Positions 27,302-53,503 of a stretch of 64,000 nucleotides of DNA are shown piece by piece. Numbering within the stretch: the first letter of the stretch is position 1; every line of letters starts with the position of its first letter. The notes under the pieces were generated by a model. The model made no database searches and was not told where the DNA came from. It saw nothing but the letters and a program-made list of their open reading frames with translations. The DNA comes from Podarcis pityusensis (taxonomy: Eukaryota). The stretch is taken from NCBI GenBank assembly GCA_964106645.2, contig OZ067038.1; one strand, written 5' to 3'. The translations under genes were made by a program, and so were the position numbers.

Positions 27302-29086
27302 GTGGGTAGCTTACAATGAGAAAACCTAAATATAAATAGAGAAATCCCCACGGAGTCACATATAACCGAGCGCCAATTAGAAAACCAGAGCTACTTGTTT
27401 GGATTGCGCCACATGATTCCATTTCCAGCCAAAGCCCAATTCAAAAGTCATAATATGCATGCAATGTTAGGCCTTGATGCCACCATAACTCTCAAATGTC
27501 AAAGTGATTAAAGCATGCCCCACCCGAAATATTTAAAAAAAATTAAGATAAATGATAAACATCTCAATTTCCCAACAAAACATTCCAGTTGCTAAAAGTG
27601 TATTGAAATTCCTTTTCAAAGAGCTTATGAGTATGAGTGAATTGCTCTACATTGACAGACCAATGTCCATATTACCCAGAAAGCAGAGGAAAAATGGGGG
27701 TATTATTTACCTTGTCCTGGGTTCGCTGCACCACATTACTATTTATGCATGCCCAAGAAGACTTTGACACCACAACCTGCTACAAAACACTGGGCACTGC
27801 CACTTTGCCAGATGAGAAACTGGGGCTGATAGTCTCCCTGTCAAAGAACCCCAACACAGTATGCAGTGATCAATCTTGAGGATTTTTGCTTTTTAAAAAA
27901 AAATCTCCCGTTTTCAACAACAAGTACTCCAGACACCCTGAGTTTCAAGTTCAAGTTGCTACATTCCTAAAAGAAAGTAAGAGGGACAGCCCCAAAGCCC
28001 AGTGAAAGTTCAGAGGTGGTCACTCAATCTTCTGGACTGAGGCCACTGTCTTGCTCAAGATATTCCAATGCAGCCATGCCAAAGCTATGAGTCAAGCAAC
28101 TCCAAGGTCCTTTGGCTGTATCCAGCCAACAACGCGTTTGTCCCAGACATCACAATCCATGACCACACTGCAGCTCTGTGGCAATTCTTCCACAGGCCAA
28201 CTTAGAAAGAAAATGCGTTTCCAGCAGGAGGGCCTTGGAAAACGGGATATGGGCCAACAGCTTTTATTTTGCTGATTCTTGCTCTGGAATGATACAGAGC
28301 TGATGACAAGTTTTGGGGGGACAAATCCAGTATAAAAGGTAATAAAAGACTCATGGTAATGAAATCAGAGAGGGAAGAGAATGTGCAGAAGAGGAATTTC
28401 TACTTGTTTTCATCTTTAAATGGAGCTTCTTGGGTTCATAGTAAGATAGGACGAGCTGAATCTTAGTAAGACATTTCCCCACATATATTTTGCTGCAAAT
28501 CCACATTTAGTTAGCTAAGTAAAATGTAGATTGATTCTAAGATCATCTCCATTGTCACTTATTTCCTTTCCTCTATCCTTTATTCCTTGCCTCTTTTATG
28601 GCAGTGTATGCTCTTGCAGCTACTTTAGTCTACCTGCACTCCACATAGAAAGAAAGCAGAATTGTAGAGAGGCAACATTTTTATGTGTGTGCATATAACA
28701 TCTTTGAAACCAGAAACTAACCCATGTTGAAGAGAATTATTATCAGAATGCAGTTGAGAAGCAAATGGAACAGCTAAAACCTATCCCTGTGTTGTCACTA
28801 ACCAATTCTTAAATTATTTTTGCTTTTAAAATACCCTAATCTTCTTTCCTTTGGGAAACCTTCTGCCAGCTTTCAGCAGACCTTAATACTTACACCATTT
28901 TATTTAATACAAAAATGTTACTGCAGCTTGTTCAGCTTTTGAACAAAATAATTTTTTACAACAGAAAGATGATTAAAAATAAGTCCAGGAGGGAATTTTC
29001 ACGATGGGAACTAAGCACGGATGTTATGATGCTCTAATATTGATGGCAACAAAATATGCTTTTTGCCAAAAAAGAAGAAAGGAATA

Positions 29087-30422: not shown

Positions 30423-30684
30423 GTACAAGAAGGGCCAGAAAGTGACTGGAGATGAGCACTTAAAAATCTCACACAAGGACACAAAGTATGCTTTGTTCAT
30501 TGAGAAGGTGTGTGACACAGACGCTGGCCTCTATGTGGTCCGGGCTAAAAATTCTAGTGGCACGGTTTCCTCAAGTGCCATTCTCCATGTGCAAGGTAAC
30601 AAGCCACCTATAAAAAGAATAGACTGGATAATCATCTGTGCCCTCTACTTGGTTGTTTCACTTGCGTACTGGCTGTTCACTTAG
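30423..30684 (+). CDS. CCDC141: CCDC141 terminal coding exon: second half of the Ig domain plus C-terminal hydrophobic tail
   Basis: TTCAG|G acceptor completes the Trp codon; reads YKKGQK...[14 protein letters not shown]...[34 protein letters not shown]. Confidence 0.93.
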
Positions 30685-30952: not shown

Positions 30953-33900
30953 AAAGAAATGTATTATTTATGGGTTACGATTGGATTGCTGGCATCCACT
31001 TCAATTTATCTCCTTTTTTTTAAAAAAAAAAATAATCATACTGTGAATGCTTTAATGAAAATGCACCAAGGTTTCATGCACTTAGAATATTTGTAGCATA
31101 ATTCAAAGGGCTTTACTCCCATTGTCTCAATCTGTGCAACAGCTCTGCAAGGTAGGATGGTATTGTTGTATTGTTATCCCCATGTTGCAAGCGGTGCTGG
31201 GTGAGCCTGGAAGAATAGTGGTTTGCTTAAGGCCCACGTAGAAGCTTTTGAAAAGGGGATTTTCCGACTTGCAGCTCAGACACTTAAGACAATGCACAAT
31301 GCTAGGTTTTGCCAATTTCAGATTGCGTGTCAACTTGTCAAAGCGAGAAGATATGAAAATAGTTGATGCATTTATCATTTTAATTCACTCTTGAATGTTT
31401 TCAAATAGAACAAGAAATTCAGAACGATGTTTAAAAGGAGGAGAAATGTTTGTGGGTGACGTGTAGTTTAAAACATGATAAAATATAAAGCAAATAAAAT
31501 GTTAATGAGTACGCCCTTGCTAAAGTAATAAGGAAGGAGTAATACTTTTTAAAGCAAGCTAAGAGTCTTAGAAGGAATTTGCTTGGGAATTGCATTTCTT
31601 TTATTTTTAAATGTGGGAGCCAGAGCAACATTGTATTATTAGAATTTCTTGCCTTGAAGGATGTAATATCTTTGATTCATAGAATAATATATTGCCAGTT
31701 TTGACAAAGGTAAGGGGGGAAAAGATGCTATTTAAAGGGAGAGTTCACCTGTACATTTTCACCAAATTCAAATGACAAGTTGATCATCGTTAATTCCTTC
31801 CGTTTCCTAGGAAGAGGAGACATACATATATGGTATCTATGTGGTTTAAAAAATGGTTGATAAATATTAGTGTAACTTTTTTTCTTGGAGAATAACTTTC
31901 TTCTTTCTTATAATGACTGCTTTGAGGGAAATTAATTTTTTTTAAAGAAATCCAATCTCTTAAAAGAAAATTACAATATGAAAATAAATCTTCAAGTGCA
32001 CAGTGTGCTGTGGAAAGAATATCTGTTACAAATGGCAGGGAGGGAGGGGGTATGAAGATGGAGGGAAGAGGAGTTTTAGCCAACTGGCTGCAGATTTATT
32101 AGAGACATGTAAAACTGAAAGGAGATCAGTCTTCTAGGCAGCCCTGTCCTTGAGGCAAAGAAAGCAGGGGAGGGAGGCCAGTTGATCCAAGACAACAACT
32201 TATCATCGTTCTATGAAAAGAATATATTGGGCAGATGATGTGCTACACTTGTGGGCACAGGCGCAGTAAGGCTGCCTCCAAGAAGCCAAGGCAGCAGGGA
32301 TGCATAAGCAGAATTACCACAGTACAACGTTCTTGGATTAAAACACGCCACAACTTTTATTGATTACAGATGTAAGTAGGTTTTGGCTTAGGCCCTGGGT
32401 ATCCTGAATCATCCAGTCTCCTGATTGGGGGTTGGTTCCTGAGATAGGGTTGCCCTAAAGCATGCATCAAATAGAAGCAACTCCTCGCGACCACCAATTT
32501 GTTGAATGTTGTGGCCCTCAGCCCCTGTCTGGGTCTACAAACAGAAGCACCTCCCCCAGGATTCCTTTAATGGGATACCCCATTTCCTTGGAGAGGGAAG
32601 GCAGAGACTTTTATAACCCTCTCCTCCGCTGTTGACTCAGGATCCTATCCAATGCCTTAGTCAACAAAAGTTGTGATGATTGCTATGAGGTAGGCAGGCC
32701 CAATCTGTTTGGAGGAGAAATTCCTCCCTGGCCCTGAATTCAGCGGTTGAAACATCCGTAGCAAGGTCATACAGCAAACCATGCTAACAAGGGTGGGAGA
32801 TAAAACTCTTGACTGGCAACAGAATTTGGAGGCGGACCTGAATATATCTTGGGGGAAGGGACCTGATTGAAGACTCCTGATGGAGTCCCAGTCAGTTCCA
32901 CCCTCTGAAGCTCTGTCTCCGGACTCACCCACAATTGGTTGATTGGTGGGTGGGGAAATTCAAATTTCCAACGGCCAGGAGGAGGCCATAACTGCCACTT
33001 CACATTTCAAGGTCAATGGATCTTCCTTTACATCCACCCTTATACATGAATCACACTGCAACAAAATTCTCCTTGTAGCTCCTTTCGGAATACTGCACAG
33101 GTGGTAACAAAGTAGGGGAAAAGTTGTGTTCCAAAAATCGCTGGCAATAGTTTCACATGCTGTCTCAGATAACACAGCTGTTTCACACATGCGTTGACGA
33201 TAGCTGCATCAGCAGTCGAAGACGAGCGCATGTGAGTGAACCATCACAGTTCTAACACAACACATGTATTTCATATCATGCCTCTCCTGAAATGCAATCC
33301 TTTTCAGTGGAGTCAGTTCACACATCTGGTGCAAGCAATGTGCATTCATATGTGAACTGGCTCTAAGTGCAAAGAGCAAAAAGTTCTCACTCCTTCAGTT
33401 ATTTCTTGGCTATGTGAAGAGAGAGGAGGTGGTGTTTCATAGAAGCGGGATTGGAGTTTACTTGTGGCAATGTTACTCTCCCTTCCTTTGTCTAGCAGTC
33501 AGATCTGCCCCTACATAAAATGTGCTTCCATCCATCTTTCTGCCAATGCTGTTGCAGGCCTGCATATGGCTATGCAGATCTATTATTAGATGCTTCATTG
33601 ATTGGAGACTCCTTTCCTGGTACATAACAGAAACTCTTTCCCCTACAAAGTAATGGGGATGAACATCCTTCTGTGGGGAGCTCCTTTTCCTTAAGGCTAT
33701 TTGCATAGTGTGTCTAAATTATTTTGAGAAAGTTTGTGAAGTTAAAGAGTCAATATTTGTACTCAAGCTTTTATAAACAGAGTGTTGGAGTTGGAGTCCA
33801 CCCGTTTCTCTCTCCTTTCCACCAGCAAGAGTTCAGAGGTCTTTCGCAGCTGCCAGACAGGTGCTGCTTTCGCTTTGTACGTTCATGGCTTGGCTAGGAA

Positions 33901-42184: not shown

Positions 42185-42409
42185 CAGTGGTACCTTGGGT
42201 TACAAACACCTCAGGTTACAAACACTTTGGGTTACAGACTCCATTAACCCAGAAGTAGTACCTCAGGTTAAGAACTTTACCTCAGGATGAGAACAGAAAT
42301 GGCGCCACGGTGGCGTAGTGGCAGCAAAAGGCCCCATTAGCTAAAGTGGTACCTCAGGTTAAGAATGGACCTCCGGAACGAATTAAGTTCGCAACCAGAG
42401 GTACTACTG
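42185..42409. mobile_element. Tc1/mariner-type MITE (third copy)
   Basis: TA|CAGTGGTACCTTGGGTTA...AGAGGTACTACTG|TA. Confidence 0.85.
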
Positions 42410-42554
42410 TATATCGCAATACCCAAAGGGAGCTAATTCAACCATTAAGGAATCTTTGCTGTGGGAAGTCATTTACTGGTACTTCAATCTCAGCAGCAGC
42501 ATTTTGCCTTTTTTAAAAAAGCAATATACCCCTTCTCTTCTTTTCTTTTCCTAG

Positions 42555-42709
42555 TACAAGGAGTGCAGCCAAGCTTCATTAAAAAATTTAGACATGCTAC
42601 TCTTCAAGAAGGAGATGATTTAAACCTGCACTGTACAATATCTGGAAGACCAAGGCCAAATGTCATTTGGACAAAAGATGGCATCAGGGTGGCAGCCAGA
42701 GGAACGAGT
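42555..42709 (+). CDS. Intergenic exon A: N-terminal half of an extra Ig I-set domain (VQGVQPSFIKKFRHATLQEGDDLNLHCTISGRPRPNVIWTKDGIRVAARGTS)
   Basis: Strong pyrimidine tract plus CTAG|TA acceptor, AGT|GTATGT donor, 155 nt, phase 1/0; I-set hallmarks P-x-F, C, G-x-P-x-P and W-x-K-D-G. Confidence 0.85.
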
Positions 42710-42808
42710 GTATGTCACAGTGTTTTGTAAATGCTCCTTTGGGAAGAACACCACATGTCTGGCTTCACACAGCTAATCTCCCTCTATCTGTATTTCATTG
42801 TTTTGCAG

Positions 42809-42938
42809 ATTGAGAAATTAGGGGACACCTATTACCTTTTAAAAAGAAACGCGGTCCTTGCTGACTCTGGGAAATATCTCTGCATTGCCACTAATGAAGT
42901 CGGGGAGGCCTCTTGCTCAGCTTTCGTAAGAGTAATAG
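42809..42938 (+). CDS. Intergenic exon B: C-terminal half of the extra Ig domain (IEKLGDTYYLLKRNAVLADSGKYLCIATNEVGEASCSAFVRVI)
   Basis: TTTTGCAG|ATT acceptor, ATAG|GTAACT donor, 130 nt, phase 0/1; D-S-G-x-Y-x-C-x-A-x-N-x-x-G motif. Confidence 0.85.
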
Positions 42939-43027: not shown

Positions 43028-43184
43028 AGCAGAATAAAAATGTTCCTAGTGCAACTGAGACTAAATCAAAGCAGGAGAGCTGCTATTCATCAGGAAAAGT
43101 GAAGGCTGATGCACCTGAAGCATTGCAAGGTCAGGATTCGCGTTGCTTGAGAGGTCAAAGGCAAACTAAAAACTGTTCCGTGAG
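43028..43184 (+). CDS. Intergenic exon C: polar linker (EQNKNVPSATETKSKQESCYSSGKVKADAPEALQGQDSRCLRGQRQTKNCSV-R)
   Basis: TTTTGTTTCAG|AG acceptor, GAG|GTAACT donor, 157 nt, open in the frame set by exon B, phase 1/2. Confidence 0.65.
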
Positions 43185-44272
43185 GTAACTTCAATTTATG
43201 TTTTCTTACCTTGTCAAGTCCTGCGGCAGCTGTTTCAGCATTTCATTTACAGAGATTTCATACCGCTCTCTCCTTTTAGCACTGTACTATTTTGAACAAT
43301 CAAAGGAAATGCCACACAAAAAGGAGCCAAAGGGGTGTGTGCAGTGTCTTGCGTGCTGTGCGCACCCCAGTTGTCCCAAACTATTCCACGCACACTAACA
43401 CGTCCCCTTGAAAAGCTACACCTAAAGGCAGAGGGTCCCTTTTAAGTACTGGAGCAAAGTACTGTAGGTGAAAAGGGAAACCAGCTGTTCCCTCATGGGC
43501 TTGCACATAAGTGCCTCAGCCCAACAATTATTTCCTAACAAAATTTTTGAATGTGTGTGTGCACGCTAAGGTTATCTCAGAAATCAAGATGGGCAACGGG
43601 ATACATATAGCCTTTGACCCCCTCTGGCAGCAGGGAGAAACACTGAGAATTGTGTTGGTGTCATTTAATGAATCGGGTTTCTGGTCAATAAGAACATGTG
43701 GGTTTTCAAGCATTGTTTCAGATTTTGCCTCTGACCAACTCAAAACTTTTCACTAAGGCAGCCAGCTAACTTAGCATTTGTGAAAATCTAGTCATGTGAT
43801 TCTCCCACCAGCAGTTTGAAATGGTTTACCACGTACTTTCACAGCACTTTGGAGATGTGGCTATTTGGTGATTATTAACATTCATGAAGCACCAATAATA
43901 CTAGCCGATAAAGTTTGGCGTGGTTTTTTCTTTGTATGGCGCATGGCTGGAATGCCCCACATAGAGGAAGTGATAATCAGCACTTAGTGTCTAAAAATAG
44001 TGGTGTCGGGGCTTAAACCTGCCTGCGAACTATGCCATGTGTCCTGAAAAACCTCCTCTTTAATCCAAGAATGTGGAGACAGACTGAAGTTGCCCAGTGG
44101 TGGCACTTTTAAATATGACTTCATGCATTCCAGAACCACAGCCCTGTTGTTCAGAGAGTGGCTGAACTCTAGTGAGCCTGGAAACAACTTAAGCCCTGGT
44201 GGTAATGGTTGGTTGTGATCTCCAGCTATCCTGGTTGCACTAGAAAACTGGACTTCCTTCTTTTGACTACAG

Positions 44273-44354
44273 AAAAACCATACAGCTGTCCTTTAATCAC
44301 CACCCCAAAGTTCCATCAAGACTGCAAGCAGAAGAGTTGGAAGATGTAGCCTGA
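44273..44354 (+). CDS. Candidate alternative terminal exon D (R-KTIQLSFNHHPKVPSRLQAEELEDVA*)
   Basis: CTTCCTTCTTTTGACTACAG acceptor; continues the phase-2 frame from exon C for 26 codons to TGA. No homology support. Confidence 0.35.
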
Positions 44355-45880
44355 GTCATTCAAGCAACAAACATTAATGGAGAAATACAGTACAAGATGT
44401 TAGTTTCAGAATCACGAGGATATTCAGAAATGGCCTCCTCAGCAAGCTCTACATAATGTTTCCCAAAATGGTTTTAGAATTATCACACAGCAGGTGGCAC
44501 AGATTGCGTGGTCATCTCTTGTGTTCAGTATACCCAGAAGTTTTATTTTATGTGATCGTAAAGACTTTTGATCATCATCAGCTCCTGTGAACCTTTATTT
44601 GGGCCCAGTGAGGGCATATTCAATTTTTTTAAATTTATTACTTTCTCTATCCAAAAGGTTCAGGTTGGAGTTGCACTACGTGATCATATTATTGTCTACA
44701 GTAAGTCCACAACTTATGCAGTGATTAAGTTCCAGGGATCGAACTCAAAGCCCAAATTGTGTTTGGTCAAAACCAATTGGGTTCAATGGCTGGCAGGATT
44801 GGCAAAGTCATTCCCGCCCCCCCGACCCGAACCATGCTCCCCTTTTTAAATTTTTTGTCATATGCGTAAAGCTGAATGCACACAAGTTAAATGTGTTTAA
44901 AGCTGCAGGCTTACTGTGTTCATCCATCAACTTTAAAGACAGTTTCATAGCAGAGAGGAAATTGGGTTGGCCCAATTGCATCCACCCAGGTAGTTTTCCT
45001 GGGACAGCAGTGTTTTCAGACCACCAGTGAAACCGTCTGCACTCCAAAGGTACACAAGCAGTATCCCTTCCAACAGGGGTGGGGATCCTCAGGCCTTGGG
45101 GACAAATGTTTATTTTATTAACTAAATTTCTATGTCACCCTTCATCCATAGATCTCAGAGCAGTTCACAGCATAAAAATACAAGACAAATGTGGCCCTCC
45201 AGGTCCTTGGAACACCCCCCCCCCAGTCTTGCTCCACATCCTCCTCGAGTGTTTTTGCCTAGCTGGAATATGTCCTTGAACTCTGATCTTGCCTCTTAGT
45301 TACCTGGGCGGAGGATAGAGAGGGATGTGTGAGGGTGTGTAGAAACTAGTCTGGTGTATAAAGATAAATTTTATTTCTCCACCCAATTTTCATAGGAAAA
45401 CGTCAAATGGGGAAAAAAAGTGCTTTACTTTTGTTCTGAGTGGACAGTTAGCATTGCAGCCAGACTTGGAAGCTATACCAAAATGAAAGCTGGCTATTAT
45501 TCCAAACACACCAGATTGGCACATCAGAGCAATTAACTCAAAGCATCTCTCTGACAACGGAGTCCCTATCCTGCTCTTTATATCGAGCTTTTTAAAAGAA
45601 ATGTCAATGATGCTCAGGATGAAACACACGTGAGTGACACACATACAAAATGGCACCTCTATAATGAGTTCTCCCCCCTTTACTTTATAACGTGCCGGAG
45701 CACTCATCATTATGTTGGGAGTTTCCTCACCCCTGTTACTGGCTGCCAGGGTGGTGAAATTCACAACACAATAGTATCAGATCCTTGCTTGAATGTGGCT
45801 GTATATCACTGGGATGATTTTGTCATGCGGGTGTACGCAATTTGAAGCTTCACAATTTGAAGGCTGTTACCCTTATCACA

Positions 45881-46244
45881 GGGACGCGGGTGGCGCTGTG
45901 GGTTAAACCACAGAGCTTAGGATTTGCCAATCAGAAGGTTGGCGGTTCAAATCCCTGCGACGGGGTGAGCTCCCATTGCTCGGTCCCTGCTCCTGCCAAC
46001 CTAGCAGTTTAAAAGCACGCCAAAGTGCAAGTAGATAAATAGGGACTGCTCCGGCGGGAAGGTAAACGGCATTTCTGTGTGCTGCTCTGGTTTGCCAGAA
46101 GCGGCTTAGTCATGCTGGCCACATGACCCGGAAGCTGTCTGCGGACAAACGCCGGCTCCCTCGGCCTATAGAGCGAGATGAGCATGCAACCCCAGAGTCG
46201 GTCACGACTGGACCTAATGGTCAGGGGTTCCTTTACCTTTACCT
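45881..46244 (+). mobile_element. Full-length Sauria SINE with 14-bp TSD
   Basis: GGGACGCGGGTGGCGCTGTGGGTTAAACC head, B-box-like GGTTCAAATCC and (ACCTTT)n tail; flanks TTACCCTTATCACA (45867-45880) and TTACCCTTCTCACA (46245-46258). Confidence 0.92.
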
Positions 46245-48587
46245 TTACCCTTCTCACATGGTAATATATGATAAGACCATGTTTGTTATATATTATATAG
46301 AGAGATGATTTTAAAGAAAATAATTCAGTGTAAAAGTAAACAAGTACGAAACAAGTTACAAAATATAAAGCAAGGACAAAGGTGGTTACAAATAATTCAT
46401 ATACTGTTGCATAATCAGTTTGAAGGAGTCGAGCAGGCAGGTGGCAATATTCTAGCATCTTCCATGCAGCTTCCAGGCTGCCATGTTGCTCTCTTCCGAC
46501 CCAAAAGTTATTACTGAAACCACAAATGAGAATAAGGGGAAGGCAGGGGATGACCATGCTGACTAACTTCAGTTAACTCAAAAAGCTGCAAACTTATTCT
46601 GTATACTTCCCCCCCCCCCAGCAATTTTCACTTTTGTGTGCGTTTCTCCAATAAGAAAATGTGCCACAATATATGATCCCATGTCTTCAGTTTTAAGGAG
46701 GTTAGAGATATTGGAAATTGCCACTCAAAAGAGCACATCAACTGAGCTCTCTGATTTTTAGGTGTGAGATGGGATGTATTGGAGAGGCCCTGCACCTTTG
46801 GGTTTGTTTATGACTTCTTCTGTCTTAGCCCAGAGTAAAGAGCTTTGCTCATCTGTCACAAAAGTTGTGGACTATGTTCTTGTTTGCTTCCTTTAGCTTA
46901 TCACACATTTCCTCCTCACAGCAAAAGCACAGAAGTGAAATCTGTCTACATAACCCATTATGATTATATTATATCCAACCGCATAGCAAGAACTAAAACT
47001 TAACAAATGTAACTTGTCCATAAGAAATAAATATTTTGCTTGAAAATGTTATAGAAAAGTTCATTTATTTTTTCTCCTCTTACATTTTGTGAACACATCA
47101 GAATGTGACTATGTGCATATAAACAACACTTGGGAAGACACATCCCTCTCCTTATCTTTCAAAAGTATTGATTTGTTGAAAAAGCAGCAAACAAAAATGA
47201 AACTTCAGTTTCTAGACGTAATGCATATTCATTCAGACAACACCCACAATTCATGGTTTGACAATAAATCATATGTTACACTGTAGCCATTCTGTAATAA
47301 ACCATGTGGTTAATGATGACTGTTCATTAGAGATGAAAGTAATTTATTTGTAAATCACTGGGAATGCAAAAAAAATAAAACAACCCGCTTACTAGACTAC
47401 AGGTTTTTAAATTCCATCTTTCTCACACACATATATTTTGCTATTTCCTCTGTGTGGAGATTTAAAACCAAGTAGAGAAGAATGTCTGAAAAGGGCTATA
47501 GTTATAGGGAATAAAGCTGACCCTTAGAAGAGCTTTTGAATTACTTGTGCCTTGTCATTGTGGTTGGTATCAGTCCTTCATATACTCTGGTGCTCTAGTC
47601 AGCGACTAATTTTAGTAGCTGCCATGTTTTAAATTGGGCCTGGGCTGAAGGCCTAGCAAGATTGGCTTCAGCTGCCTACGGCTGACACAAGCCGACACAC
47701 AACCACACGGGAGGCTTAAACTTTGTCTCCTTAGTAGAAACAACCACAGAAGTTCTGACACAGTTTTGATGCTCTGGTTTTTGTTTTTTGCTTGACTAGC
47801 CAAGGGAATAGCCGTTGTACATAACTAGGGTCTAGGGGAAAGTCTGTAGAATTTGGGGAAAAGACAAAAAGTCCCCTGTGGCCTGAACTGAACCCTTATT
47901 GTAATGCTACTGCTGCCTTGGGGAAAAGTAAGATCCTACGCGGACACCGTAGAGTTGAGGCGATAGCCATAGATCAAACCAGCCCTGGTTGTCAAAAAAG
48001 GCGAGAGTACAGGTAATTTTAATCCTAAATATATAACTATATAGGGCACTATTCTACATTTTTGCAAAAGTGTAAGGACTAACACCACAAGGGAAACACA
48101 CAAGTGAACACTGTCCCCCAATATGATACGGAGGCTTGCGTGGAAATCTGAGAACAGATTTATGGGGTGTGGGTGGGGTAAGAAGAAGGGGAGATGATTC
48201 AGTTGCACAAGGAGAAATCCTTGCACTAATGCTTTGTTGTAGTCTCGTTGCTAAGCAACAACGTGCCGAGCTCACCAGAGTGGGAGGCCAGCCAATCAGA
48301 AGAGTCTCTGAGGTGTACTTACTTCAGATATTGAAGTCAGATCCAGTGCTAGATCCAGTGACAACTGGGCATGGCAATAGTTGAGAAGCCATTTTGAGAC
48401 ACATGGCGAAAATAAAACGCTTCTCTCGTTTTCCCAGTCTTAAGTTCAGTTTTCCACATTTCCGTATCAGTTTGTATTTTTAAAATTCTTTGGTATTTTT
48501 GTGTGAATTTCTACTAAGATACATATTTATACTGCAAACTACACTGTGACCCTTGCATGATGAGCAGTATATAAATTTAATAAATAG

Positions 48588-48636
<49 letters not shown>

Positions 48637-49920
48637 AAAGCAGTTTTCCTTAAGTTTTGTATGTTATGGTCACTAAGCAACTTTATGCACACTTTAGCTG
48701 AGTATATGCATTTTGGTTTACATTACAAAAGAACACCACTGCAAAATTTGGAAAAGTGCAAATTTCAAAAAGGTATCTGTGTTCTGGTTCATCTATTGTT
48801 CCGAAAAGTGGGTGCGTTTAAATGTGAACTGAGTGGAATTTCTCTAGATGAAAAAGCTGGCTATACATTTCATAAATAAATGAATTAATATTTCCTCTAA
48901 AAATGGTTCAGTCTTTAAGAAGACATTCAAGAGGGAGCTTGCTAAAAATTGTTACTTTCCAGATTTTAACTACTACCCTAATAACATGGCTGTTTCCCCT
49001 GGTAATATGGATTAACACTTCGGCAATAATTTAGTGTTTTGTCCACATAATGAAACTTTAATCATGATGCTAAGTTTCCAGCTTTGCATCCAGAACATCA
49101 TAAACTTCCTAGACAAGTTGTGTTCACCATCCATCTTGGAGAGCTGGGCTGTGTCCAACCTTTGTCACAGTTCATCGTGAAACCTTGAGTAAACCACTAT
49201 TTTCAGCCTCAGTTCCCCATCCAACAAATGGGAGTAAAGGTGACCTATCTCTCATAATCATGATGGAGACAACCCCACTTTTCAAATTAAAATGTCCCTT
49301 AAGTGGTATTCAACTAAATTTTACTCAGAGTATACCCACTGAAATTAATGAACACCAATGAGCAGATTTTGGTGGGCCAAAGCAGGGTCAGCCCACCAAT
49401 GAGGCCAAGTGAAGTGACTGCCTCAGATGGCAAGATCCACAGGTGCAGCAGATCCCGATGTCAATCTTTCTTCCCCTAATGTTCCTGATGTAGATCTTCA
49501 CTCACCCCTTCTTCCCTTGCAGGGAGGGGAGCACCATTTTGGGGTTCGCCTCAGGTGCCAAAATGTCTTGGGCCGGCCCTTATCCAGAAGGTTCCATGGG
49601 GAAGGCAAGATTGGTACCAAAACCAACCTCCTCTCCCCCATGGAAGCCTCATTGCATCCAAGGCCCTTCCATGAACAGAAGGGCACCACGGTTGCAGTCA
49701 ACGTCTTATCTCTGCTTTCATTTTCTGCGAAGTGGGGAGGTGGACTGCAAAACACCACCCCTCTTGAACATTTCTGCTGTTTGCAGCACAGTTTTTATTC
49801 CTCTTTGCTAAATCCAACCTCTGATCTCTGATCAAGGATTATTTCCAATTTATATGAAATAAACAAATGCTTTTGTTTGCATCGGAACATGCTTCGTTTA
49901 AGTCATCCTAGAAGCAATGT

Positions 49921-50263
49921 GGGACGCAGGTTGTGCTGTGGTCTAAACCACTGAGCCTCTTGGGCTTGCCGATCAAAAAGTTGGCAGTTCGAATCTTCAC
50001 AACGGGGTGAGCTCCCGTTGCTCTGACCCAGCTCCTGCCAACCTAGCAGTTCGAAAGCAGACCAGAGCAAGTAGATAAATAGGTACCGCTCCAGCGGGAA
50101 GGTAAGTGGTGTTTCCGTGTGCTGGTGACATGACCCAGAAAGCTGTCTGTGGACAAACGCCAGCTCCCTTGGCCTGAAAGCGAGATGAGCGCCGCACCCC
50201 ATAGTTGCCTTTGACTGAACTTAACTGTCCAGGGGTCCTTTACCTTTTTTTTTTTTTTTTTTT
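49921..50263 (+). mobile_element. Sauria SINE with internal deletion, T-homopolymer tail and 11-bp TSD
   Basis: Same head and body as the 45881 copy; TAGAAGCAATG at 49909-49919 and 50264-50274. Confidence 0.9.
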
Positions 50264-50859
50264 TAGAAGCAATGCCTTAACTTCCTGAGATTCCTGCATT
50301 GCAGGGGGTTGGACTGGATGACCCTTGGGGTCCCTTCCAACTCTTCAATTATATGATTCTATGAACTTTCTTCAGAAGTGCTAATCACTCTGACATGTAA
50401 AGGCTTTATTAAGTCAAAATAATATATTCTTCCAGTATAATAAGTCCACCTGGTATGCAACCAGCTTACTTATTTGACCTGGAGATAGACAGTTGAATTT
50501 GCCCTTTTTTTGTTCGCAAGGAGGCAAATGGATGGTTTGGCTGGACTGGGACTAGAAGAGCCCATTACTTAGTTGACTCTTTATCACAATTAGCTAATAA
50601 CATCTCTATTAACACACCCACCCACATGACCCCATTTCTTTACTCTCCCACTTTTTTAAAAAAAAGATACCTAAGGCATGAACTCCTTAGTAGCATCGGA
50701 TACAATCCCAGTTCCCCACACAACTATACTTTGTGGAAAAAAACCTGGTTGCTTGTTCCTCAGTATGGCCTCTCTTTCTAGTGCCAAAATTAGCATTGTC
50801 AATCAGGCAAACAGGTGGCCCATTGCATTAAGCGGACATACACCCCTTTTTGCTGGGGA

Positions 50860-50948
50860 AGCCAATCAGAAGTGGCGCCGAGGTGACAGAGGCAGACTTG
50901 TCAGCAGATCTGGGGTATAAAAAGCTAAACAACCATGTTAGCACTTCT
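50860..50948 (+). promoter_or_regulatory. TTN: TTN core promoter (CCAAT box 50862-50866, TATA box 50916-50923)
   Basis: GCCAATCAG and TATAAAAA; the TATA box starts 33 bp upstream of the recognised start of exon 1. Confidence 0.85.
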
Positions 50949-51163
50949 GAGCAGTCGTGCATTCCCAGCCTCGCCTCGGGTGTAGGGATTGCAGGGAAAA
51001 GCAAAACTACACCGTCTCAACCGTGTAGTTTTGTTTTTTTCGGCTAGAGGCTCAACCATTCTCATGTTGGGATTGTTTAAAATCATACTCTGGATAAGGA
51101 CGTCGTTTAAGGAACTTACGTTTGGGCGTAGCCCACCCAATTTAGGCACTCTTGTGCAATCAG
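50949..51163 (+). other. TTN: TTN exon 1 (non-coding 5' UTR)
   Basis: Begins GAGCAGTCGTGCATTCCCAGCCTCGCCTCGGGTGTAGGGATTGCA, matching the recalled 5' end of human TTN mRNA; ends at CAG|GTGAGT. Confidence 0.9.
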
Positions 51164-51407
51164 GTGAGTGGCATGCCTGGGTTGACTGAGCTGTGTTTTC
51201 TATGTCAAGTAAAGCCCTGGTACAAAATGCATGTACCTAGGAGTGTCTAGTAGCTTGAATTAAGGGGGTGGGGTGGGGGAAAAGCATGAAGTCCTACATG
51301 ATTCTTTTAAACCAGAATGCAGAAGTAGAGATCTCTTGGCAAATGAATTTTTAGGTCTTTGTAATAGTTGGCTAATATGTCTTTAAATGTGCTTGAGTGT
51401 GAAAAGC

Positions 51408-51448
<41 letters not shown>

Positions 51449-52793
51449 TATTAAAATGTCTGGTTAACTTTTAATGCTTCCAGGGAGTGCTCAAGGTTAT
51501 ATTACTTGCAGATAAACGGAGATGCTCCCAGAATAGCTCTGATAAAATGCACATGGCATCGGCTAGTCGCTGATGACTTTTTAAGGGAATCAGCTGCTGG
51601 GGTATCCGTTACACTGCAGATCTGGACCACTTGCCTGCTGTCAGTCAAACCTGGGGTGGTTATTTTTGGAATGTGACATTTCACAGGCATACTTTCGAAA
51701 TACTAATGATACAAAAGTCATATAAGATTACCGTTTGGATAAACAGCAATTTCCCCCGCTACATTAAGGTAGAGAAGAAAACAAATTGGGGACTGAAACA
51801 TCTATGCTATGGAATTAAGTCACCTTAAGTAGTCTTTGCTTTCTTTCCTTTTAGCTCAGTTCTTTCTGCTTCAGATAATGTGAGGAACCCAACTTGGAAA
51901 ATGACGTAAAGTCATCTAAATATTCTCAATTTAAAACTAAGCGTTGCAACGAATTCATGTAAAGGAATTCACTTGTTAGAAATCTGGAAGTTTTAACTAT
52001 TTAAGAAGAAAGGGGGCCATATGCAGAAAAAGGCAGCATGTTCATATTGCTATTATGAAGCTTTCTATTATTATCTCAGTGGAATTCTGCTGTCTGAACT
52101 TACAGGCATAGGAGTTTTTAAGATAGCTCAGAGAAATAGGCCTCCCATATGCCACTAGTAAAATCTCTGGTACCTCAGTTTGTAGTTTTGTGGGAATTCA
52201 TTAAAGATATCGGAATACTGATCCTGCCTCTTTTATGATAAATCCAGCAGGCAAGTAAATACAGAGGGATATTATAGGTCCTGCATACTGAGTTGAATTA
52301 TTACATGGCTGTATGCTTTTTTTATGTGGTTTGCCAGAAAATGAGGACATTGTGTTTTACCAACAAATGTTTTAGGGGTGGGGTGGGGTCAGATTTTGCA
52401 CCTTCCTGCAGTTGTTCAAACCATCAGTGTCAGTTATCTTATAGCCTAGCTCACATTTCACAGGGCTCCTCACTCTCTAACCTAGATTCAACTGTGCTGC
52501 CTGTATGTTTTACAAGTACATTTTTATTCTGCTTCCCCCCACCTCTCCCCACAGAGTTCATCTTTTGTATGAAAGGAAACTATCAAGCATTCTAAGGAGG
52601 TTCTTTTTAAACACTTCTAAATTTCCACATAGACTGAAGATTTCCAGTACACTTTAATGGTCACTCATTTAAAGGCACGTGGAATGGGGAAATGATACTA
52701 GCACTTTAGGGCAGTCTTGTGATTTTGAATAAAATCATTTCCTCCCACCCTCCACCCCTCCATTTTCACTTCTGGTTTGAGAAGGGCTTAAGG

Positions 52794-52998
52794 CAGAGCT
52801 TTCCAAATGGTGAATCGCAACACGTTTGTGTGTCGGCTGCAGCGTGTAGGTGTGTCGCGTAACGCTCCCTGAGCTCATTCCGGAGCTGGAAAGGGCTTAG
52901 TTTAACCTCCGGTTTGCTAGTAAAGCCGGATTACTGTGTTGCGAAATGATGCATGTCTGAAAAGGGTGTCACTGACATGAAAAGTTAGGGAAGCTCTG
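52794..52998. mobile_element. hAT (Charlie-like) MITE in TTN intron 1 with a perfect 8-bp TSD
   Basis: GCTTAAGG|CAGAGCTTTCC...GGAAGCTCTG|GCTTAAGG. Confidence 0.85.
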
Positions 52999-53503
52999 GC
53001 TTAAGGAGTGCAGCAAATGTCAGATAATAAAGCAATAGCAGCATGAGATAGGAGGCTCTTAAGCGGCGTGCTTATTTCCATTTGGCAATATGGACTGTCC
53101 TTCCTTGCAGGTTTTTAAGCAGAGGTTGGATGGCTGTCTGTCATGGATGCTTTAGCTGAGATTCCTGCATTGCAGGGGGTTGGACTAGATGACCCCCCAG
53201 CATCCCTTGCAGCTCCATGATTCTATGTGCAGCTCCCTTTAAGCCGTTTGCAACCAGGTCACTCACTGTGCTAATCAGAGCTGTAGATAGTCGGGATAAC
53301 TACAATGCATCAACCTCCATAAAATGCTGCTATTAGGGTGTGACTCAGTCAAGAATGTCATCAGTGGAAATCACTCCATAGGGAAGTGTAGGGCAAAGAG
53401 TTTCATGTCACCTGGTCATGCTCTCTATGCTCAGGACTTCAGAAGGATCGACATCTCACATACGCTTTTTATTTCCGTCTTTCTTTTCAGAGTGCCTTTA
53501 AAG

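Follow-up and report, generated by a model that had tools for sequence, protein, structure and literature searches.

In mouse, CCDC141 occurs as a transmembrane (TM) form at the nuclear envelope and Z-line and as a TM-less form near the M-line/A-band; its C-terminal immunoglobulin (Ig) domain binds titin and its spectrin repeats bind nesprin-1 (PMC12657953). Two recent papers on the origins of CCDC141 and titin assign a single Ig domain to vertebrate CCDC141, on the basis of human and mouse, and describe the human protein accordingly (PMC12198301, PMC12657953) – as the initial annotation of the DNA considered here also stated.

This analysis concerns a second Ig domain of CCDC141 (Ig2), encoded downstream of the known one (Ig1) in the lizard Podarcis pityusensis, within a window of 64,000 nucleotides (the whole stretch of contig OZ067038.1 that was analysed). 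Ig2 is real, expressed and conserved, most probably belongs to CCDC141, and is already included in automated annotation of non-mammals; no paper on a second CCDC141 Ig domain was found in the literature searched. As it stands, the finding is a point of annotation and evolution, not a new mechanism. The features on which the argument turns are collected in Table 1.

Table 1. Features between the Ig1 exons of CCDC141 and the start of the TTN coding sequence (positions in the window)
Feature	Positions	Strand	Remarks
CCDC141 exon with second half of Ig1	30423..30595	+	ends at internal phase-1 donor, CAAG/GTAAC, GT at 30596
Read-through of that donor (known CCDC141 ending)	30596..30684	+	29-aa hydrophobic transmembrane tail and stop; TM domain of isoform 2, PMC12657953
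Exon A, first half of Ig2 (strands A–D)	42555..42709	+	155 nt; TAG acceptor; phase 1 in, phase 0 out
A–B intron	42710..42808	+	99 nt, GT–AG
Exon B, second half of Ig2 (strands D–G)	42809..42938	+	130 nt; phase-1 donor
Exon C, linker of low conservation	43028..43184	+	157 nt; phase 1 in, phase 2 out; splice-site scan and RNA contigs
Exon D, terminal	44273..47391	+	stop after 24–26 codons, long 3′ UTR; 3′ end approximate; RNA contigs
TTN exon 2 leader	53491..53503	+	13 nt before ATG (53504); open; in frame with a phase-2 donor such as that of exon C

The two exons, the intron between them and the motifs quoted from them are present as the initial annotation described; the unit is of phase 1 on both flanks, as is titin Z2, and lies – again as proposed – 12 kb past the CCDC141 stop (30682–30684) and 8 kb before the TTN TATA box (about 50916). 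The proposed exon set holds for A and B, and had overlooked exons C and D as well as the internal donor of CCDC141. Preceded by a strong pyrimidine tract, the exon A acceptor ranks second among 1362 AG sites in a 20-kb interval under a simple position weight matrix. The claim of an intact I-set fold is borne out by profile searches in which the two lizard exons were each run separately, never as a joined A–B model: exon A alone covers positions 1–42 of the 90 in Pfam I-set (PF07679; E = 1e-9) and exon B alone positions 52–90 (E = 9e-8), both above the curated cut-off, and the tortoise orthologue matches positions 1–90 (E = 6e-18). Among 1.8 billion representatives, the matches to exon A are dominated by multi-Ig giants; a search of solved structures returned generic Ig matches, and one against proteins of 51–163 aa returned no match to exon A, which has no bearing on longer relatives. 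Between the CCDC141 stop and TTN (30.7–53.5 kb), no further Ig exons were found, and the ATNING open reading frame at 44355, considered as an extra Ig exon, was rejected, as it sits 3′ of the exon D stop. A MITE-like, high-copy element with inverted ends and very high read depth occupies 42190–42410, 145 nt upstream of the exon A acceptor.

Exon C was predicted by the splice-site scan and then confirmed by RNA contigs, which came from three runs of three studies in two organisms. In these contigs, the A–B joint occurs in two runs (one from each organism), and the joints from B to C and from C to 44273 in three each. The runs were labelled as RNA by guess; since the joints fall at GT–AG ends, they represent spliced molecules. 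The A–B splice in two organisms thus answers the question of expression, whose absence had been named as grounds for refuting the module. In a raw-read RNA run from the first organism, depth on the exons is zero, which points to tissue-restricted or low expression. Exon C starts 3 nt later in the second organism, with the frame kept, and possesses a second, phase-1 donor after 43129 that is used in one run; the choice of donor sets the frame in exon D, where the stop falls after 24 or 26 codons. The 3′ UTR of about 3 kb ends near an AATAAA at 47374, close to an A-rich stretch, so that internal priming is another possible cause of the apparent 3′ end. Within this UTR, a SINE-like repeat at 45876–46256 is missing from the contig of the second organism (a 379-nt skip), and is an insertion that is either recent or specific to a lineage. 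Homology of lizard exon D to the terminal exon of turtles and birds was rejected as not significant, both for DNA (167 of 500 shuffles scored as well) and for protein (about 450–550 of 2000). The terminal-exon homologue of one bird carries a premature stop (L014:1782–1901), with A, B and C intact there. In the tortoise, a CpG island (L009:14480–15352) provides at least two alternative first exons spliced to A (contigs L004–L008 and L010), and these transcripts possibly encode a single-Ig protein of about 195 aa.

The preferred reading, to which we give a probability of roughly 0.7, is that A–B–C–D form an alternative 3′ end of CCDC141, reached by splicing from the phase-1 donor at 30596. Were this donor ignored, the frame would continue into the hydrophobic tail and its stop, yielding a tail-anchored form; were it used, a 12-kb splice would lead to A–B (Ig2), C (the linker) and D (a short tail, a stop and a long UTR), and the product would be a soluble protein in which the spectrin repeats are followed by two I-set domains in tandem and, at the end, a disordered tail. 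In the lizard, Ig1 would then be joined to exon A, loss of the tail would be expected to take the protein off membranes and, by extension from mouse, Ig2 may serve as a second titin- or sarcomere-binding module on the soluble form.

Several observations bear on this switch. The AG/GTAA donor after Ig1 and the TM tail occupy the same position in tortoise, bustard, whale and sardine. In both organisms, the lizard-type contigs begin exactly 30 letters before exon A, with 28 unmapped letters followed by AG; such starts would be left by an upstream exon that ends in AG and forks at its donor, and the donor at 30596 ends in CAAG and forks by read-through. Seven other AG/GTRA sites lie between 27300 and 42550. 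Full-length CCDC141 models – which are predictions – have the order Ig1–Ig2–tail in a terrapin (XP_053900467, X4), the painted turtle (XP_042716604, X6), a bustard (KAM6071380) and a merganser (KAM9189652), as does a CCDC141-like model of the sardine (XP_062389611); Pfam finds spectrin repeats and two I-set domains in XP_053900467. Orthologues of exon A thus stand directly after Ig1 in annotated CCDC141 proteins, whose models use that same donor. Two parts of the initial annotation fall away here. That the module is an unassigned extra titin-like one is not supported, since it lies within annotated CCDC141 models of turtles, birds and sardine and in a clade apart from titin Z1 and Z2; and its novelty is removed, on the initial annotation's own terms, by RefSeq/GenBank models in two turtles, two birds and the sardine, which already join these exons to the first CCDC141 Ig.

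Other parts of CCDC141 in the window offer some observations of their own. The large CCDC141 exon shares about 80% identity with a cluster that includes a gecko protein, and 65–70% with birds; among the proteins that it retrieved, those of bustard and sardine run on past Ig1 into Ig2. When a donor midway through Ig1 is read through, the result is a short conserved ending at 27306–27329 (WVAYNEKT-like), also present in gecko and bird proteins, which matches the type of the TM-less isoform 1 (PMC12657953). In the 3′ UTR, the segment 31662–31714 is 85% conserved with tortoise and has a strong donor-like end in the lizard only; a donor at 31710 was rejected as a conserved site, being GC in tortoise and preceded by stops in the upstream frame.

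Syntenic exons lie between the CCDC141 TM exon and TTN exon 1 in desert tortoise (L009), bustard (L001), duck (L011) and sardine (L002). Identity to birds and tortoise is 61–69% for exon A and 74–80% for exon B (61% and 74%, respectively, in bustard), and identity to the sardine 44–46% (46% for A, 44% for B); exon C reaches 41–45% identity to tortoise. In the four sauropsids (lizard, tortoise, bustard and duck), the A–B intron measures 97–100 nt and its donor, AGT/GTATGT, is unchanged. Nei–Gojobori dN/dS among sauropsids is 0.13–0.32 for exon A and 0.16–0.27 for exon B – a range similar to that of CCDC141 Ig1 (0.19–0.31) – and the bootstrap upper bounds remain below 1 in 12 of 12 pairs, in agreement with the purifying selection that the initial annotation had supposed and that a ratio near 1 would have contradicted. 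In a tree of 32 domains, built on a short alignment with rough support and with the lizard row left out, the Ig2 domains of fish, turtle and birds group together in a single clade (99/96) that excludes Ig1, Z1 and Z2. The best identity of Ig2 among 150 multi-Ig giants is 35–51%, the comparison with titin comprising Z1, Z2 and those giants; one-to-one orthology with a hemichordate or insect Ig domain is ambiguous (support 87/76). The Ig2 exons are anciently conserved, and their distribution over fish and sauropsids suggests two Ig domains in the bony-vertebrate ancestor.

In mammals, searches with profiles found no remnant of Ig2 in the 10 kb (gray whale) or 13 kb (franciscana) past Ig1, at loci that end short of the TTN promoter, exon A lying 9–14 kb past Ig1 in sauropsids. 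Four mammalian CCDC141 proteins, among them those of whale and camel, end in the TM tail. A loss of Ig2 in mammals is plausible.

The AlphaFold model of the tortoise orthologue (P0238) is an eight-strand β-sandwich with a pLDDT of about 85 over residues 21–100, followed by a disordered tail, and Foldseek aligns this orthologue with titin and obscurin-like-1 Ig domains at a TM-score of about 0.9. The 11 orthologues compared all carry cysteines at three positions, on strands B, F and G, and the lizard exons have them too; among the 2479 other Ig domains scanned, 84 have this triad. The same CysB/CysF/CysG triad occurs in 21% of titin I-band domains (PMC5766482). It may allow redox-tuned mechanics in Ig2.

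Three other readings of A–B–C–D deserve to be weighed against an alternative ending of CCDC141. A decaying relic, transcribed as noise and with no protein function, would account for the looseness of exon D – two frames in the lizard, a premature stop in one bird – and for the RNA run in which nothing was found; however, the dN/dS values and their bootstrap bounds refute it for A and B, the exons are intact in lizard, turtles, birds and sardine alike, and splice sites and intron length are maintained, which leaves this reading next to no probability. It is unlikely, too, that A–B–C–D are mainly a short stand-alone transcript, driven by an internal promoter and encoding a protein of roughly 190 aa with one Ig domain and a disordered tail, although such a transcript may coexist with the long isoform. 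The logic would be that of telokin, a terminal Ig domain released by an internal promoter, and the tortoise speaks for it: in six RNA contigs, exon A is spliced from first exons in the CpG island 5 kb upstream, one of which gives an in-frame ATG, and this entry from separate first exons instead of Ig1 counts against the CCDC141 ending. RefSeq moreover holds separate genes for 176–242 aa at this locus in ducks, a sparrow and tortoises, named MLCK-like, ROBO2-like or titin-like, and a non-coding block 250–450 nt upstream of A is common to tortoise and birds. Yet the lizard has no CpG island between 30 and 51 kb except in a SINE, its window matches neither the tortoise first exons nor the shared upstream block, its contigs, unlike those of the tortoise, do not extend into a unique first exon, and the first exons that are seen vary among species and contigs.

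The third reading takes A–B–C as a bridge through which CCDC141 would continue into titin without a change of frame, in the order Ig1, Ig2, linker C and titin Z1; this would be a vertebrate 'connectitin' that has survived. The end of exon C is of phase 2 in lizard, tortoise, bustard and duck, a phase-2 site (GA/GTAAGG) overlaps the sardine stop, and the 13-nt TTN exon 2 leader is open in each of the four genomes compared, those of lizard, tortoise, bustard and sardine; a hemichordate protein, XP_006823021, fuses a CCDC141-like spectrin block to 30 Ig domains, and transcripts spanning CCDC141 and TTN have been reported in mammals (PMC12657953, PMC12198301, citing Labeit 2006). The phases would match by chance one time in three, however, and the leader shows no synonymous change, its nucleotides themselves being conserved, in the manner of a splice or initiation signal. 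Every spliced joint from C leads to D, the only other outcome being intron retention, in RNA contigs that cover a 6-kb stretch around the exons with TTN outside it; the depths going out of C cover those coming in (79 in and 31+66+16 out for X1; 53 in and 49+10 out for X6), and the database models all end at D or C, none crossing into titin. Exons A–D, 8 kb upstream of the TTN TATA box and with transcripts ending in D over that same stretch, are not exons of TTN, and we consider the bridge highly improbable. Its specific form – that C is joined in frame to TTN exon 2 in a particular muscle or at a particular stage, giving a fused CCDC141-Ig1-Ig2-linker-titin in non-mammalian vertebrates, with the bridge lost in mammals – is likewise very unlikely. 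If it were true, a connectitin- or Zormin-like fusion would tie the Z-disc end of titin to a nesprin-binding spectrin rod, and the junction from 43184 to 53491 is the exact place at which a surviving fusion would show.

The titin side of the interval has some further features. A model from Sinocyclocheilus grahami (P0218, UniRef A0A672NVY8) places titin Z2 immediately after CCDC141 Ig1, with a phase-1 junction, and is probably a product of gene prediction. An inverted repeat at 50997–51040, in TTN exon 1 (5′ UTR), is shared by the lizard with tortoise, birds and sardine and makes a candidate conserved RNA hairpin; two non-coding blocks of TTN intron 1, at 51450–51727 and 52389–52464, share 79–85% identity with tortoise and birds – the first in part with sardine too – and are candidate enhancers.

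An Ig2-containing ending of CCDC141 accounts for the misnamed small RefSeq genes beside TTN (MLCK-like, ROBO2-like, myopalladin-like and titin-like), and an ancestor with two Ig domains and a donor switch between membrane tail and Ig2 brings CCDC141 closer to Zormin with its many Ig domains. Compared with the long-isoform models of turtles, birds and sardine, the lizard locus has the same exons in the same position and phases; it differs in that the terminal exon of birds and turtles has no significant likeness to lizard D, and in the second donor of exon C. Mammalian CCDC141 isoforms 1 and 2 (PMC12657953) resemble the lizard gene in their spectrin repeats, Ig1 and a TM tail produced by read-through, and their localisation depends on the isoform; they differ in that only one Ig domain is described for them, and the TM-less isoform 1 stops in the middle of Ig1 with no Ig2 added. 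With the Ig domains of the titin I-band, Ig2 shares the I-set fold, the three cysteines on B, F and G and an F–G spacing of 11 – a triad that CCDC141 Ig1, unlike Ig2, does not have – but identity to them is only 20–34%, and Ig2 is not a titin exon. Drosophila Zormin/sallimus and 'connectitin' (PMC12198301) have a spectrin block and then several I-set domains, which lie upstream of titin-like sequence or are fused to it, and the titin-like protein XP_006823021 of Saccoglossus follows the same spectrin-then-I-set plan; in comparison with all of these, the lizard series comprises two Ig domains and ends at exon D.
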